29,085 bases of DNA. Origin: Zygophlyctis sp. KS116. Its lineage: Eukaryota; Fungi; Chytridiomycota. How positions within the stretch are numbered: the first letter of the stretch is position 1; every line of letters begins with the position of its first letter. The notes beneath the pieces were generated by a model, which made no database searches, was not told where the DNA came from, and saw only the letters and a program-made list of their open reading frames with translations. Shown here piece after piece: positions 466 to 8,399 of the stretch. The position numbers and the translations under genes are program-made. Location: positions 1 to 29,085 of the forward strand of contig BAAFSQ010000119.1 in NCBI GenBank assembly GCA_054661495.1, given 5' to 3'.

Positions 466-1390
466 ATGATTCTAAATTTACTGTTTTTGCTTACAATTCA
501 TGCATTGACCATTGTGAATAAAACCGAATTATTTGCAATGCAAGTAATAGTTTTAATAGATAATTTGTCTAGAGACTGATACCATTTATTAATGCGCCTT
601 ACTGTACTGATGGCCTATTGTCGTGGAATTGTGTACCATGTCTGAAATTTAAAGGCGTTACAAATATAACATTTTTAGGAGAGGAAGATGATGTTTTTGG
701 TTATTCGGCAGTCCATTTCAAGTCCAAAATGTTGGTCTTTGGGTTTCGTGGGACTCGAAATCTAAATAATTGGCTTAATAATCTCAAGATTGCAAAGCCG
801 AATGCTCCTTTTCCTAATGCTCCAGAGAATGCAAAGATACATTATGGATTCTTATCAGATTATGAAAAAGTAAAAGATCAGTTTTTAGAAATCTTTAAAA
901 AATATGTTTCAAATTATCCAGAATTTCAAGTCAAAATTATCGGACATTCTTTAGGAGGTGCATTGGCATTATTGGCAAGTGTAGATCTTGCTACTCAAAA
1001 TATTTTAGTATTTAAATTTCAAATTAATGATAGCCTCTGCATAAAACCCTCTTATTTACAATCGGAATGCCAAGAGTGGGTAATCAAGATTGGGCAAAAT
1101 GGATAGACTCTGTAATTCCTCCAAATCAATTTTTACGGATTGTGAATCAAAATGATTTGACACCGCATTTACCACCTAAATTTTCTGGATTTCAACATTC
1201 TGGGTTGGAAATTTGGATCAGAAATTCTACACATACATTTTATTGTCCTAGCTCAATACAAGAAAATAGTGAATGTAGTAATACAATTTCCTTTGGTTGG
1301 AATATTGCAAAACATGGGAAAGCTTGGGGCTTTGTAATCGGACATAAATCATGCTACTCTTCAAAGATTTTGACTGTTCAAAAATATTAA
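466..1390 (+). CDS. Secreted class-3 (fungal triacylglycerol) lipase, 3 exons
   Basis: Hydrophobic N-terminus MILNLLFLLTIHA, then intron 544-572. Motifs FRGT, KIHYGF, nucleophile elbow GHSLGGALA, GMPRVGN (after a 26-nt intron near 1008), RIVNQNDLTPHLPP and FQHSGLEIWI. Confidence 0.92.
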
Positions 1391-3158
1391 ATATCGATAT
1401 TATTAAGAGCTAATAACTCGTCATCTTTTTCAATTGAAGGCTCTGCCGGGTTTTGATGAGGTGTTTCATTATAAGCATCAAGAGTATCATCTTTTTCTTC
1501 TGTTTTCTTTGAATATTTTATAATCTTGATTTGATTCTTGTCTTCCATTAAAGTATCCCTGTTTGATTTTGGTTTATGGGAGTCTTTCTTATTTTCATTT
1601 GAATTCAGGTCTTTTCTGTTAAAAATAAACACTCGAACAACATGATAAGATAAAAAAGGCCATGATATCTTTCCTGGTAATGATACTGGCCGTCTGAAAA
1701 GTATTCTTTTTTTCCATTTGATAGAGATTCCTTTATTTGGAAAGTAAGGTATATCTGTGGATCTACCCGAATCATCTACAGAGTGATACTGAACTACATA
1801 TTTTTTGGATAAATATTGTCTATACGTCTTTAAACAAAATAGTACACCAGGATCTAGTAAAAATATAAATGCATCAAAAAATCCCTGAATTTTTAAGAAA
1901 AATCGGTACCTTGAGCGCAAGAATAACAACATTAAAGTATACAAATGTCAAATTATCTACGAAGCCGAGATTGGAAGATAATAAAGCATACGGGAAATCG
2001 CAAATTATAGGCACAAATAGATAAAGACTTGTTCTAATGGCAGATTTCTGAAGCATTTGCTTTTCTTTCGAAAATTCGAATTGAGGCATATTTTCAGCAT
2101 CATCTCTTCTAATAGAATCTTCTTTAGAAATTTTAACTTCATATTTGGCTCGAAGTCTAACTTGATTGAACAAGTTACTGTAAAAGATGACGATGCATGT
2201 CATGCAAATAATAACCGAAACGTAAATCCATGAAGTGAAAAGTCCCCTATAGATAAGTAAATCAATTATACCAGATTTTTGACATTATATCGTCAGAATT
2301 TTTCACCCTTAAAGCGGCATTATTAAGTTTATTATGATCAAATTTGAAAGTACAATTACCATCTACGTATCCGAATAATCCTATTTTTTCAGTTTAATAA
2401 TATACCAAGACTTAGTTGAATTACTAGCAAAAGAATGGAAACGAATATTGGAAAAATGAAGTATATAGTAAATGTTCGAATGGTATTTTTGGCTTCAAAT
2501 ACAGTGATACGAACCAGATTCACACCTATTGAAATTGTATAAAATAACTGAGGTTAGACGATATTTTAGTTACAGAGCATAAGAGTGGCCAAACTTGAAA
2601 TGCAGCAATAGCTGTACATTTCCAATCATCCTATAATTATTTATTGTTAAGCATACCTGAGTGACCCTTATTAATTGAGAAATGCAATAAAGCAAATCCA
2701 TAAAAATCATTGAAATTGCAAGTCTTATTGAGCATTTCTTTGCCCTATCAATTAGAATTATTTTATATCTACAGAATCGGCTGATAAACAAACATCAAAA
2801 TATAAATCATCATTATGATTAACATAAAAGCAATAGAGATACTTGCCGTAGTAGTTCCAAGCATGAATGGGTAATCAGAGTTTTCGTACTTTAATGCAGA
2901 ATATACCTTTGATTCTCTATTAATTTTTATTAATTCGTGTGTTAAATTATATCCGTAATTGTTTGGAACATCCCTTACAATATTAATTGAATCATTTCCT
3001 TTGATTAAATTTGAGCAATTGTTCGTATCTGGTTGTATTCCATTAGGATAGCAATAGTGATGAGTGCAAGCGTATGTTTGATTTATTTCACGATCAAAAT
3101 GAAAACTACAACAGTCTGCATGATCACTGCAAATAGTGGTACTGGTGTGATTACCCAT
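1387..3158 (-). CDS. 7TM receptor A, cAMP-receptor/Git3-like GPCR with Cys-rich N-terminal module (7 exons)
   Basis: Spliced through six 25-28 nt GT-AG introns: MGNHTS..six-Cys module..TM1 (SISIAFMLIIMMIYILMFVY), RLAISMIFMDLLY, DWKCT (ECL1 Cys), FYTISIGVNL, FGYVDGNCTF (ECL2 Cys), TM5 WIYVSVIICM, RTSLYLFVPIICDFP, TM7 LKGFFDAFIFLLDP. This pattern is typical of cAR1/Git3-like receptors. Confidence 0.82.
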
Positions 3159-3285
3159 CTTAGAGACTCTAACTGTCCGAACGCGAAACGCACGCGAAAC
3201 GCACGCGAAACGCACGCGAAACGCACGCGAAACGCACGCGAAACGCACGCGACTTCGCGAACTCGACGCGCTTTCAAAACTGATA
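3159..3285. promoter_or_regulatory. 127-bp bidirectional promoter shared by the two receptor genes, containing clustered CGCGAAA (SCB/E2F-like) elements
   Basis: It is the only sequence between the divergent ATGs at 3158 (-) and 3286 (+). It contains 6 CGCGAAA, a TTCGCGAA palindrome (3254-3261) and a further ACGCG (3266-3270). Confidence 0.6.
3181..3252. repeat. Perfect 11-bp tandem repeat (ACGCGAAACGC)x6 plus partial ACGCGA
   Basis: Units start at 3181, 3192, 3203, 3214, 3225, 3236, with a partial unit at 3247. No mismatches between units. Confidence 0.98.
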
Positions 3286-5282
3286 ATGGGTCAAATCTGT
3301 AGCAGTTATCCAGACTGCTGTGGTGGGAATAATTACTACCTGGATCAGTATGTAAATCAGACTTATGCTTGTACTCATCATTATTGTTATCCCAATGCGA
3401 CTCAACCATTAAATCATAATTGTTCTACGAATTTAACTGGAATAATATTCGATGCTCCTATTAACAATGATATGGAAAAAATCAGATTGTGGCACGAACA
3501 AGAAATGAGACGTATTGCAGAAGAAAAACGCCTTTATGTTGAGATTCCACTGATGCTTAGTCAGATCACTGGAATTCTTTCAATATTTTGCAGTACAATT
3601 GTTTGCTGTATCTTCATTGGAATTCTTATATATCAACCAATGATGTAAGTATTTTCAAAATTTATACGATCCAGTGCTCGAAGATGTTCTCTTAGATTAA
3701 GTGTTGCTGTTTCGATCATGGATATGATATTCTCATACAATCAAGCAATACCAGCAAATTACGTATATTATGATTAATTTATAACTAGTATAATGATTGG
3801 AGATGCACAGCCCAAGCAGCCTCTCAAATTTGGGCGGAATTATTATCTGTAAGTCACTTATCAACAATAAACCAATCAGTTATTCTTTACAAGTTCTATT
3901 GCGCTCAATTTACTTTTGGTTTTTGTTTTTGAATTAAACAATACCAAGAATATTGAACCATATTACTATGCAGTTCCTTTGATACTGGCTTCTGTACTGG
4001 TAGCTGTTCCATTAGCCAAAGGTGAATTAATATTCTAATAATATTTAGATCAGCTAGGATTTGATAGAGAAAATTGCTTTTTTAGAGAACCTACCATAGA
4101 TTATAATAATAAAGAAAAATATGATCAATCAGTTAATCAAAACACTTGGTAAGGATCAATTTTTGATGTAAACAGGTTATTTTATACAGGATGGATGTGT
4201 GCAAGTATCTTGTGGTGTGCTTTAGTTACATTCTTATTTTGGTCGACCATCACCCGAAAAAACATGAAGAAACAAAAGGCAACAAGTAAACTTGGCACTT
4301 CGTCTCAAGGGGAACAGTCTACAACTGGAACGCAATCAACATTTAAAAATACTGCTACTGCAAATAGTGTTACTGAAAATAGTGTTACTGCTGATAAAAA
4401 TGCTAAAAATGGGACCACCACTGGAACTGCTTCTAGTAGTGGAAACAAAAAGTCTGGACATTCCTCTGGATCCGGTTCTGGAACTAACAAAATCGAGAAA
4501 AAGAGTCAGGAAATGATCCAAAAGGCAGTCATGAGAATTGCATTTTATCCAGTTGTACCACTTGTGACTGCACTCCCACTGGCTCTTGCACTTACAGTCC
4601 CTAGTATTTCAAGGGTGTGGCAATTTGGTTGGTTCTCGTCAATCATGTCGAATCTTCAAGTATTTATATTCTATTGATTAGTTAGGGATTTGGGAATGCA
4701 TGTATTTTCTACTATGATCCTGCCGTATCTCTTGCTCGGGAGACATTTCGAAAGTTTTTAACAGAGAAATATGTTCTCAAGCATCATCCTATTCAGGATG
4801 ATGGACAGCGTTCAAAGGTCTTTGTAGGAACTGGGAAGCCTACTTTCATGTATGTATTTGCAAGATTCTTTAGTGCACGAAAAAAAGATTTTATTGTCGA
4901 AGGCTCAAAGAAGAGAGCAATAACAAAAGGATCCACTGCTTCAAATAGCACTGCTCAAAAGCCTAAAAAAGCTTCTGCTGCACTGGACGATATGGACGAT
5001 CTTGATTCCCCTTCTAAAAATTCATACTATCAAAGTGTTTCTACCTCTGGGTATAAACCCGAGATGTATAGTGGTGCTACTGAATCTATGATGACAGCAT
5101 CAATCGCCCAAACCGACAATTTCGATCCTGCCCAGTCGAATGTTTATCAAATCGAGACTGGGCTAAAAACAGAAGAAAATGCCCAAGAAGAAGAAAATGC
5201 CCGAGAAGAAGAAAATCTCATGGATGAAGATGAAGATGATATTGAAGAGGCAGAGATTTTGAAAGAAATGCAGCAATTCTAA
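3286..5282 (+). CDS. 7TM receptor B, cAMP-receptor/Git3-like GPCR with Cys-rich N-terminal module (7 exons); paralog of receptor A
   Basis: Six GT-AG introns (26-31 nt) at the same positions as in receptor A. Motifs RLSVAVSIMDMIF, DWRCT, FFTSSIALNL, LGFDRENCFF, TM5 WMCASILWC, RIAFYPVVPLVTALP, TM7 LQGFGNACIFYYDP. It has a long S/T/G-rich third intracellular loop and an acidic C-tail. Confidence 0.85.
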
Positions 5283-5399: not shown

Positions 5400-6401
5400 A
5401 TGATCGTATTGATCTTGCTGATATTCAATGCATTTATCAATGTAAATGCAAGGTTAGATGCTAATTTTATTTCACTTCTCCGTTCAAAAGTGACGGAAAC
5501 ATCTAATCTCTTATTCTCCCAATACCCAAACGAGAACTTTATTGTTTTAGATGATGCATTAAATGATTTTGAGTCTAAATCTTTAAAAATACTTGAAAAG
5601 TATGAAAATTCAGGTTTATCTAGAAACCAGCTTGATAGACTGTCAACAAAACTTGAAAATGAATGGAAGTCTAGTGTTCAGTGCACTCTAGATCAGTCAT
5701 GTAATAGACGCTTAGGATACAGTGTAGGGGATGGTCACCCTGCAGGTTCTCAGTTTAAGGCCAAGGAGGAGGTCAACTCTGATCAAAGACTTAAAGAGCT
5801 GAAAGAGTTGAAAGAATTACATCAGAAATATTCATCTATAATCACAAAAAAATCACAAAATTCTGATTCTGTTGTAGAATTATTTAAAATTCTTAGACAA
5901 AAATTAAGTCAACCAATATCAAGACTTTATCATTTTCAGCTGATTATATTCTATGCAATTTTTGGCCCACTCTTCAATTTTGTATCTCAAAACACAATCA
6001 AGATTAGAAATTCAATGATTGAAGCCGCATCTAATGATGCCAGTAAATTTATAACACTAACTCTACATAAAGTTATAAATCAAATTCATACTATAGATGT
6101 AGAGAAAGCCTCTCAAATCCTCACGAGTAAATCTATTCAAGATCCATTAACAACGATCTCTAGTAATTACTTTTCTGAAACTCTCTTGAAATCTGCAAAG
6201 TCTCATGAATTTGAAGAATTGATCAATACTCTAGAAATTGAAAAAGTTTCTCAAAGGATCACTTCTGGAGCTATACAAGAAACTACAAAGAATTTTCCCA
6301 GTAAAAAATCTTTTTTAATTGGATCTATTATATTTGTGGCTGTTCCAATCATAATTTCTCTTGTGTCTAGACTGTGTAATATATCTAAAAAGAATGAATA
6401 A
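5400..6401 (+). CDS. Hypothetical secreted or membrane-anchored protein, intronless
   Basis: 333-aa ORF with signal-peptide-like MIVLILLIFNAFINVNA, an internal hydrophobic stretch (FQLIIFYAIFGPLF) and a C-terminal TM (FLIGSIIFVAVPIIISLV). No family recognised. Confidence 0.75.
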   Translation: MIVLILLIFNAFINVNARLDANFISLLRSKVTETSNLLFSQYPNENFIVLDDALNDFESKSLKILEKYENSGLSRNQLDRLSTKLENEWKSSVQCTLDQSCNRRLGYSVGDGHPAGSQFKAKEEVNSDQRLKELKELKELHQKYSSIITKKSQNSDSVVELFKILRQKLSQPISRLYHFQLIIFYAIFGPLFNFVSQNTIKIRNSMIEAASNDASKFITLTLHKVINQIHTIDVEKASQILTSKSIQDPLTTISSNYFSETLLKSAKSHEFEELINTLEIEKVSQRITSGAIQETTKNFPSKKSFLIGSIIFVAVPIIISLVSRLCNISKKNE

Positions 6402-6670
6402 TTGTGATTTTAAAAAAAAAATAGATTATACGTATGTACTATTTAGTAAATCCCCGAGTCAGGATCATAATGGGCGCAACCGACGTTGTTAAAAAGAGTG
6501 TTGAGGGCCAAATGTGGCGTGCATAGCGTTCATGGCTGGGATGAATGGGGAGGAATGAATATTTGTCAGGCCTCGGATAGAGTTTGTCAGGGCCTCGGGG
6601 AGAGAGTGCGGCTCATGGAAAACGGGGGAAAACGAGGAGGAAAATGTTGAAAATTCTACTTTCAAAAAAA

Positions 6671-8399
6671 ATGTTAAAACTCTTGGTTTTAATTTCATTC
6701 TTCATTTTCTTACAAGCTAGTCCGATTCCATTGGATTCGGACAATCTTGATGCATCGGACACATCCATCAAATATATCTTCTCTGATGCATTCAGATCAA
6801 TGGTCTCAGTTTTTAGAACAAATGAAGATAATTCATTTTACTCAGCATTACAAGATTTTATAGATTTAGAGCCGCATGAACTAAAGACTCTGCTAAAATC
6901 TCAAGGAAAAATTGATTTTCTAATGGGAAAAAATAGGTTTTCAATCAATCAATTTACATCAAAAATGCAAAATTCAGTTCTATTCACTGGAACTGACAGG
7001 TTCTCAAAACCGATTTTCATAAAAATCTTTTCACAAAATTCTCAAGAACATTATTATCAAGAACTCAAAGTTTTACATTCTAGTAAATCAGACATTTTGA
7101 TTGATGCTTCACACTCTCAAAGAGCCCGTGGAATATTCGAGTCTCTAAAGTTTTTAAGAAAGGAAAAGGAAGCTGAACCGTATATTTTGATCCTAAAATA
7201 TACACAAGGAACGCCATTCTCTGATGTGATTCATGATTTTAATGTTGGGAGATACTTGGAAGATCATCCTTTTGATAAAAGTTACATTGAGAGTATATGG
7301 CCAGATTTTAAAAAAGTTTCAGTGGAGGATTTTAGAGCTCTTTATTCTATCTATTTGAAGGATAAATTTAGAGTAAAATTAGGAGATGAGTATTATATTC
7401 ATCCAGAGTTAGATCCTGAAAAAGTGATTTTAACTCCAAATAATGATATGGTGGTGATTGATTATGGTGATCTAAAAATCATACCCAGAGGATATAGAGA
7501 AAGAAAGTTGTTAGAGGCAAATGCACAAGAGAAATTGATTGATCTATTTGAAAAGTTTTCAAAGACTACAAGATCTGAAATTAATATTGAAATTTTAAAT
7601 CTCAAGATTCCGGATGAAATTCTATTCAATCCGAATTTTGATAGTACTGTGTCACAAATTGATACTGGATCACATTTGGATGAAGAAACGATAAATTCCT
7701 ATGATCCTTCAGTGAAATCAATCAAGGAAGGAAAACACAGTACACCAGATGGGGATTTCTCTGCGGCTGATCATTGTAATTTATTTCTTTCTAAAATTAC
7801 TAGTTGAATCAGTACATGAGAAGAAAAAATCTAGATGGAGGATTGATAGGTCTTTAAGTGAATCCAAAGAGTATAGTACGGATTTGGCGACTCTAAATGA
7901 AGAAACAAGTTCTCAAAACCCAAATGATTCTCATTCAGCAGATGATTCTAGGACTATTCTCGCAGGGTCAAAGAAGCCGAATATGATTAGTGAAAATGAT
8001 TTTGCGGCTTATTTTGAACCACTGATATCTAATTCGAATTATAAGCTACCTAAAGTATTAGATGATGATTCTTTTTTGATACTTGAAGGTGATGATGATT
8101 TTGAAGTAGAGGATTTGCCGTTTTTTGGTGGAATTTTTAAAGACAAATCTTTTGGTTCAGAGCTTACAGAATCGTTTCATTCAACTTCAAGTACCCTAGA
8201 CGAACCCTGGAAAGGAAGCTTCACTGAAGAGGAGTTTACTCCACCAAAAAGACATTCTTTCTCAACAGCTGATCAACCCAGATCCGAGTCTGCAATTTCA
8301 CAAAACATGAAACGAGTGAAGTCTTTCATAAACAATCGCCCCGTTTCTCCCATTCCTCAAAATGCATTAAAATTAGATTTGATTAGAACAATCGCCTAA
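6671..8399 (+). CDS. Signal-peptide-bearing protein with a degenerate protein-kinase-like domain and disordered C-tail (2 exons)
   Basis: MLKLLVLISFFIFLQASP signal peptide (alternative in-frame ATG at 6644). Kinase-like landmarks in order: IFIKIF, YYQELKVL, YILILKYTQG, YIHPELDPEKVIL, VVIDYG. A 28-nt intron at 7776-7803 joins the two ORFs in frame. Confidence 0.7.

Follow-up and report, generated by a model that had tools for sequence, protein, structure and literature searches.

Two genes that diverge from a common spacer in the window (the whole stretch of DNA that was analysed, 29,085 nucleotides) raise the question of what their products are and whether the head-to-head arrangement means that these products act together. 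In gene models derived from the window sequence itself, gene A, an A-type seven-span receptor, lies on the minus strand at 1387-3158 (exons 3158-2773, 2744-2657, 2630-2574, 2547-2406, 2380-2272, 2246-1910, and 1884-1387; 538 amino acids), and gene B, a B-type seven-span receptor, on the plus strand at 3286-5282 (exons 3286-3644, 3675-3762, 3789-3848, 3880-4021, 4049-4148, 4176-4659, and 4686-5282; 609 amino acids). Both reading frames close without internal stops, and all 12 introns are of the GT..AG type and 25-31 nt long (25-28 nt for the six of A and 26-31 nt for the six of B). The initial annotation had described paralogous divergent genes with matching introns, start codons 127 bp apart, and an old duplication as their origin, and this description held in every part: the gap between the start codons spans 3159-3285; the six introns of each gene have the phases 2,0,0,1,2,0 and occupy equivalent places in the A-B alignment; the two proteins are 29% identical over 468 columns (E 4e-69); and A-type and B-type genes form old clades with 99/99 support.

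Both genes are intact in two strains, every coding indel found in the lake samples has a length divisible by 3, and A has a dN/dS of 0.5; by these signs, A and B look functional. For the ectodomain, dN/dS of 0.5-0.8 comes from few changes (27 in A and 16 in B), which relaxed constraint fits too. The SNP list from lake contigs is partial and contaminated by a paralogue on contig C96 and was given no weight.

Hydropathy analysis placed seven hydrophobic spans in each protein, as had been claimed at the outset, and not fewer. The predicted topology has the N-terminus outside and the C-terminus inside, a feature of GPCR membership, as is the cysteine pair, one at the top of TM3 and one in loop 4 (extracellular loop 2), which is invariant in every family member recovered. 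Lysine and arginine residues in loops 1, 3, and 5 versus loops 2, 4, and 6 number 15 versus 7 in A and 18 versus 6 in B, and every family member has 4-9 Asn-x-Ser/Thr sites in its N-terminal region. A TM2 Asp, a TM3 Asn, and a TM7 Asp-Pro are likewise invariant across the family. The intracellular divergence that had been noted between the two proteins was also borne out: loop 5 of B has 94 residues, 34% of them Ser/Thr, and is followed by a net acidic tail, whereas loop 5 of A has 45 residues and its tail is net basic. Overall, these features of the sequence support the view that A and B are genuine and intact paralogues that cross the membrane seven times and have a layout like that of receptors. 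In such a protein, a glycosylated and disulphide-bonded N-terminal module of about 95 residues would stand outside the cell, followed by seven membrane crossings, in which a disulphide of the kind usual in receptors would tie loop 4 to the top of TM3. Loop 5 and the long tail would be cytosolic and would most likely serve coupling to a heterotrimeric G protein and phosphorylation. A G-alpha gene is present at G000:C271, which shows only that the pathway exists.

To which receptor class do the two proteins belong? In exon-by-exon scans of Pfam-A, no single exon of A, B, or their relatives reached the Pfam cut-off; the only hit was to 7tm_1, for A exon 6 and in register with TM5-TM6 (E value 0.007, 16.3 bits against a cut-off of 30.5), and the relatives gave none. 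On exons, Dicty_CAR (PF05462) gave no match at E values up to 10, and Git3 (PF11710) gave none in the Pfam-A scans of all exons, so that neither model reached its gathering threshold at exon level. Three exons and three exon profiles used as queries against PDB sequences gave chance-level matches only. Scans of the genome in six frames found nothing with the Dicty_CAR and 7tm_2 models, but control genomes gave nothing either, which makes these scans uninformative. Among language-model (Atlas) neighbours, 7tm_1 was found for A exon 6 (0.91), and Dicty_CAR (0.89), Frizzled (0.83), and 7tm_2 (0.81) for the TM3-TM4 piece from L010; the named neighbours of both separate fragments are all GPCR-clan families. 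The initial annotation had assigned the pair to the cAR1/Git3-like class. Given the exon-level Pfam result, this assignment is putative, and the only pointers to it are the language-model neighbours and a resemblance of motifs; the cAR/Git3 class is thus kept as a lead for A and B. That family models stayed below threshold at exon level, and that protein collections hold no annotated full-length relative, would also suit seven-span membrane proteins of a non-GPCR kind, whether transporter-like, lipid-handling, or of a novel fold. We consider this improbable because the extracellular cysteine pair, the TM2 Asp, and the TM7 Asp-Pro are all invariant, because loop 5 and the tail are both long, and because two separate fragments have GPCR-clan families as their only named language-model neighbours.

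The part best conserved between A and B is the ectodomain module, exon 1 being 42-44% identical versus 29% overall. Family alignments delimit this N-terminal Met-Gly cysteine module at 3003-3158 on the minus strand in A and at 3286-3465 on the plus strand, the first 60 codons, in B. The Met-Gly start is invariant. A conserved extracellular cysteine module had been claimed before, and the claim is right for four of the six N-terminal cysteines, which are invariant, but not for the other two, which co-occur nowhere but in A, B, and their nearest relatives. No Pfam domain matched the module, which is about 50 residues long and has four invariant cysteines, and an AlphaFold model of B exon 1 built with 14 sequences had a pLDDT of 56-70 over it, too low for a fold search.

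The start of A exon 1, the spacer, and the start of B exon 1 together make up a cassette (2962-3465), which has a second copy on contig C96. The cassette is 87.5-96% identical at the DNA level to L004 4590-4943, and G000 holds only these two copies; the summed contig depth across the cassette is 5-7x that of the flanks, a value that is not a copy number. The promoter and first-exon module also head one GPS-type and one LRR-type gene. The GPS-like motif is confined to the C96 gene and lies in its unrelated body; neither A nor B has a GAIN/GPS region. The key unit could conceivably be the cassette itself, that is, a CGCG-box promoter with a Met-Gly-module first exon copied or converted ahead of unrelated gene bodies, so that a surface-protein regulon would have arisen by promoter-and-first-exon shuffling with A/B as the founding divergent pair; we regard this as rather unlikely. 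The bodies concerned are seven-span receptors, an LRR-cap protein, and a GPS-motif protein. If true, several surface proteins would share a single outer module and a single transcriptional switch, and reuse of a promoter and first exon in this way, should it be confirmed, would make an unusual path to new genes.

The spacer between the start codons contains nine of the 18 CGCG cores of the whole 29-kb window; the 150 bp upstream of either gene contain 9, versus a background of 0.18 per 150 bp. Within it, at 3181-3252, lies a tandem array of 6.5 perfect copies of an 11-bp unit containing CGCGAA, which is unique in the genome and for which 0.05 matches are expected by chance. Of the repeat-built bidirectional promoter that the initial annotation had proposed, the 127-bp spacer with its 6.5-copy array stood, but the array is not a conserved part of it: it is strain-specific, with no more than about 1.5 units both in L008, a 95%-identical contig, and in the paralogous C96 copy. 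The conserved element is a cluster of CGCG boxes, which precedes every B-type gene in whatever arrangement and is missing upstream of the lone A-type gene. The divergent starts are well within the 1 kb that defines a bidirectional pair, the gap between start codons being 65 bp in L008. CGCGAA-type boxes would then be a hallmark of B-type promoters in all relatives, one box having recently grown into a 6.5-copy microsatellite in this strain, which may alter the level of expression; A probably shares the boxes by position only. The public runs that contain the stretch number 20, of which 0 are RNA.

Fragments in freshwater metagenomes are the only known source of the family, and the host of A and B is presumably a freshwater fungus. 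A word search for full-length proteins with two long natural open frames, containing the module or TM6-TM7, returned only fragments, and two JGI metagenome scans added nothing new. The head-to-head pairing, whose absence from close relatives the initial annotation had set against its own reading, is kept in L008, which includes an orthologue of A. B-type relatives occur in L009, L011, L014, and L020; those in L011, L005, and L020 are in direct tandem or beside unrelated genes, and the A-type gene of L010 stands alone. In L014, a module gene diverges from a B-type gene at a distance of 96 bp with CGCG boxes in between; the sequence of this partner is cut off at the contig edge after 92 codons. 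A class-3 lipase gene (579-1390, plus strand) is convergent with A in the window, as identified from open frames and its L014 orthologue; because that orthologue lies beside the L014 receptor cluster, with Urm1 beyond, the L014 locus is orthologous to that of the window. Judged from this gene order, the head-to-head pair probably recurs in a distant relative, at the locus orthologous to this one. L006 was considered as a counter-example to the synteny and rejected: it has neither flank in common with the window, and its gene, which is frameshifted and lacks half of TM7, is probably a dispersed, dead copy.

What, then, does the pairing mean? We think it probable that the two proteins, one of A-type and the other of B-type, belong to a family of GPCR-like surface receptors with seven spans that is restricted to one lineage. 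Their genes, products of an old duplication, would have remained head to head beside Urm1 and the lipase, and the receptors would most likely be separate sensors with different outputs rather than an obligate dimer. The initial annotation had entertained an obligate A-B heterodimer or two-receptor module, in which the genes would stay together since the proteins work only together. The pair in L008, its probable presence at the orthologous L014 locus, and the ectodomain module as the best-conserved part are what one would hope to see in that case. However, B-type genes also occur in tandem or by unrelated genes and an A-type gene alone, so that obligate pairing is not the rule of the family, and evolution has been much faster in the A-type than in the B-type clade; we hold obligate pairing to be very improbable.

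Adjacency might also carry no functional meaning, a local inverted duplication having survived by chance in a highly compact genome whose genes all lie about 100 bp from their neighbours. The stop codons of the lipase and A overlap (1387-1390), the next gene starts 118 bp past B, the family duplicates locally in several orientations, and CGCG boxes are a general property of B-type promoters, all of which suit such an explanation. It is a possibility that we take seriously without expecting it to be correct, as the divergent layout at the Urm1-lipase locus seems older than the split between the window and L014 lineages, whose B-type proteins are about 40-55% identical. The receptors through which zoosporic fungi perceive signals are poorly known, and surveys lean on Pfam models, whose exon-level scans miss the A/B family. 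If it is indeed GPCR-like, this lineage-restricted family would be a concrete entry to host or mate sensing in lake fungi; it has an extracellular module of its own, an ectodomain that evolves fast, and a promoter signature by which it can be recognised. The links of these features to function are so far putative. Further, the strain-variable 11-bp array lends itself to a natural experiment on how promoter repeats affect expression.

Compared with known receptors, A and B resemble cAMP-receptor-like GPCRs (Dicty_CAR, fungal GPCR class 5) in their seven spans, outside N-terminus, cysteine pair between TM3 and loop 4, and long cytosolic tail, and in a TM7 Gly-Phe ... Asp/Asn-Pro pattern that we take to be common to both. 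To our knowledge, cAR1 has neither a cysteine-rich Met-Gly N-terminal module nor a 94-residue Ser/Thr loop such as that of B. Dicty_CAR is the nearest named language-model neighbour of the TM3-TM4 fragment, yet it matches no exon; the cAMP-receptor-like class is reported from early-diverging fungi (PMC12842992). Secretin/adhesion and Frizzled-type GPCRs (7tm_2, Frizzled) have, like A and B, a cysteine-bonded extracellular N-terminal domain ahead of a seven-span core, but the module here is of about 50 residues with four invariant cysteines, no Pfam match, and no GAIN/GPS.

For the promoter, the comparison is with cell-cycle boxes: the SBF consensus is CGCGAA, and the SBF/MBF and E2F factor families are both reported from chytrids (PMC4862756). 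Each 11-bp unit contains CGCGAA, one base off the E2F site GCGCGAAA. A cell-cycle reading of the CGCG boxes found no support, as none of about 15 other genome loci with at least 3 clustered CGCG cores lies beside recognisable replication genes among the open frames scanned. In yeast, the histone H2A-H2B genes and GAL1-GAL10 are divergent paralogue pairs that are co-expressed from a bidirectional promoter. The A/B pair, a candidate for such co-expression, differs from these in having its boxes also upstream of unpaired family members; like them, it consists of two genes that diverge from a short shared spacer with repeated sites, which in yeast are activator sites.

When both strands were read and the exons joined, the AT-rich region (G+C, 30–37%) showed the layout of a eukaryotic gene pair and yielded two complete genes: gene A at positions 1387–3158 of the minus strand (538 aa, 7 exons) and gene B at 3286–5282 of the plus strand (609 aa, 7 exons), with 127 bp between their ATG codons. 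The joined proteins were checked for frame, compared with each other, analyzed for hydropathy and used in tblastn searches of the fetched loci; Pfam and protein searches were run exon by exon. All 12 introns are bounded by GT..AG, their phases (2,0,0,1,2,0) are common to A and B at matching alignment positions, and the two proteins are 29% identical over 468 columns (E = 4e-69). Together, the frames, introns, phases, alignment and short gap bear out the head-to-head paralogous pair proposed in the initial annotation. Introns of 25–31 nt are unusual in fungi, and the set at 1885–4685 (n = 12) is extremely short and uniform, all members falling in this range; several end in an in-frame TAG, so that read-through is blocked. 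The stop codons of gene A and of a plus-strand lipase gene overlap at 1387–1390. This leaves the two convergent genes with no intervening sequence and makes overlap of their 3' untranslated regions inevitable.

An exon 1 profile searched against 1.84 billion proteins gave 12 matches, each an exon-sized metagenome open frame of 99–185 aa. No full-length annotated relative of A or B was found in the protein searches, and no further paralogue of the receptor core was found in the genome assembly. The stretch is present in freshwater, lake and estuary metagenomes from 13 studies, none of which is RNA. The fetched contigs carry complete or partial family genes with introns mostly as in A and B (exceptions: L005 lacks intron 1, L009 intron 2 and L010 intron 4), and thus the shared intron positions of the pair are a family trait. 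A tree built from exons 1–4 separated an A-type clade (A, L008 and L010), with long branches, from a B-type clade (B, L006, L009, L011, both L014 genes and L005), each with 99/99 support. This split indicates that the duplication is old, as the initial annotation had concluded from the introns.

A and B still lie head to head in L008, a contig of 95% identity that came from a different sample, and the expected pairing is thus seen in a close relative. Because Urm1 and the lipase are common to L014 and the left flank of the window, L014 represents the orthologous locus; it contains two B-type genes in direct tandem and, 96 bp upstream of the first, a divergent gene that has a Met-Gly start and the N-terminal cysteine module before the contig ends. 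L009 is, by downstream synteny, the positional orthologue of B, and its contig begins within a recent tandem copy. No divergent partner was found at L011 (direct tandem), L005 or the A-type L010. Pairing at L008 and probably at L014 but not at these loci indicates that the divergent pair is a long-lived feature of one locus and not a family rule. L006, in which neither window flank is present, holds a B-like copy (6019–7886) whose frame is shifted in TM5 by the deletion of 1 nt and whose TM7 is missing its first half; a GDPD gene flanks it on one side and a retroelement-like open frame (PEG10/RTL capsid match) on the other. This copy is probably a dispersed pseudogene.

An 11-bp unit is repeated 6.5 times without mismatch at 3181–3252, within the A-B spacer (3159–3285). 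This array is unique in the assembly, and Logan contigs break at it. The repeat-built promoter described initially is weakened, as the array is absent from L008, whose 65-bp spacer has ∼1.5 units, and from the second genomic copy of the cassette on contig C96 (see below); the conserved feature is the CGCG cores. Within 150 bp upstream, 2–9 cores were found for every B-type gene, the C96 copy and one LRR-type gene, against a background of 0.18 per 150 bp; the lone A-type gene has no upstream core. Some 15 other loci have at least three clustered cores; the neighbours that were scanned are Pet127, a GRAM protein, a carbonic anhydrase and unknowns, with no replication genes among them. A near-identical CGCG/CACA-rich 23-mer at C89:466–488, C145:651–673 and C204:17570–17592 may represent a small family of repeats with no link to the receptor promoters. 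The CGCGAA within the 11-bp unit is the SBF consensus and is one base off the E2F site (PMC4862756). Overall, the divergent arrangement is partly conserved and the promoter signature is conserved.

Invariance in the N-terminal module is confined to Met1, Gly2, four cysteines, an Asn-x-Thr and a handful of further residues. Of the conserved extracellular cysteine module noted initially, four cysteines are shared across the family; the additional pair of A and B is either wholly present or wholly absent in a given member, as fits a third disulphide. The dN/dS ratio between the window and L008, based on few changes, is 0.51 in A exons 1–5 and 0.80 in B exon 1; overall, the ectodomain is thus not strongly constrained. 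All module-first genes begin with Met-Gly (window 3286 and 3158; L005, L006, L008–L011, L014, L020 and L023), Ser/Thr is usual at position 6 regardless of the insert ahead of the first cysteine, and the proteins have no signal peptide. At the sequence level, this start resembles an N-myristoylation signal, which would conflict with the outside N-terminus predicted below.

Contig C96 (L004, 4590–7756) carries a second copy, 87.5–96% identical, of a 500-bp cassette that spans the beginning of A exon 1, the spacer and codons 1–60 of B. Across the spacer and the 60 B codons, the two copies match at 96%; further on, they are similar at the protein level only, to about residue 83. On C96, the cassette reads in frame into a 700-residue open frame rich in glycosylation sites; a GPS-like motif, PT repeats and a single membrane span lie downstream. 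This pattern resembles gene conversion of the 5' part of an older chimera. The module also stands at the head of LRR-cap proteins in relatives: in P0003, P0010 and L023 (413–712), an LRR N-terminal-cap-like cysteine motif follows it, replacing TM1. P0003 has the module twice in tandem; in L023, six CGCG cores, arranged as three doublets, lie directly upstream. Some lake strains seem to have a stop directly after the module, with loose ends at 3465.

Hydropathy analysis revealed seven hydrophobic spans each in A and B, in agreement with the seven-TM prediction. Lys+Arg residues in loops 1, 3 and 5 versus loops 2, 4 and 6 number 15 versus 7 in A and 18 versus 6 in B, and the N-terminal region of ∼95 residues has six cysteines and 4–5 Asn-x-Ser/Thr sites (4–9 in nearly all relatives); this bias and these residues predict an outside N-terminus and an inside tail. 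Invariant or nearly so in all recovered members are a Cys at the top of TM3, a loop 4 Cys, the TM2 Asp, the TM3 Asn and the TM7 Asp-Pro. The sole Pfam match, weak and under the cut-off (E = 0.007), is 7tm_1 on A exon 6 with TM5-TM6 in correct register; fragments of relatives gave no Pfam match. Language-model neighbours of the same exon are 7tm_1 fragments (0.91; a lead, not a test). G-alpha is encoded in the assembly. At the C-terminus of B-type proteins, also in distant relatives, an acidic run precedes a short, similar hydrophobic motif (window 5190–5282; L014 2400–2448 and 4660–4710), which may act as a signal for sorting or docking.

In conclusion, A and B are a real gene pair of an orphan family that is probably of GPCR type, and we regard them as GPCR-like with fair confidence; the A-B heterodimer and co-regulation proposed initially are kept as hypotheses. 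Membership of the cAR-like class is a plausible proposal: the named language-model neighbours of a TM3-TM4-loop piece from an A-type relative, which serve as leads only, are Dicty_CAR (0.89), Frizzled (0.83) and 7tm_2 (0.81).
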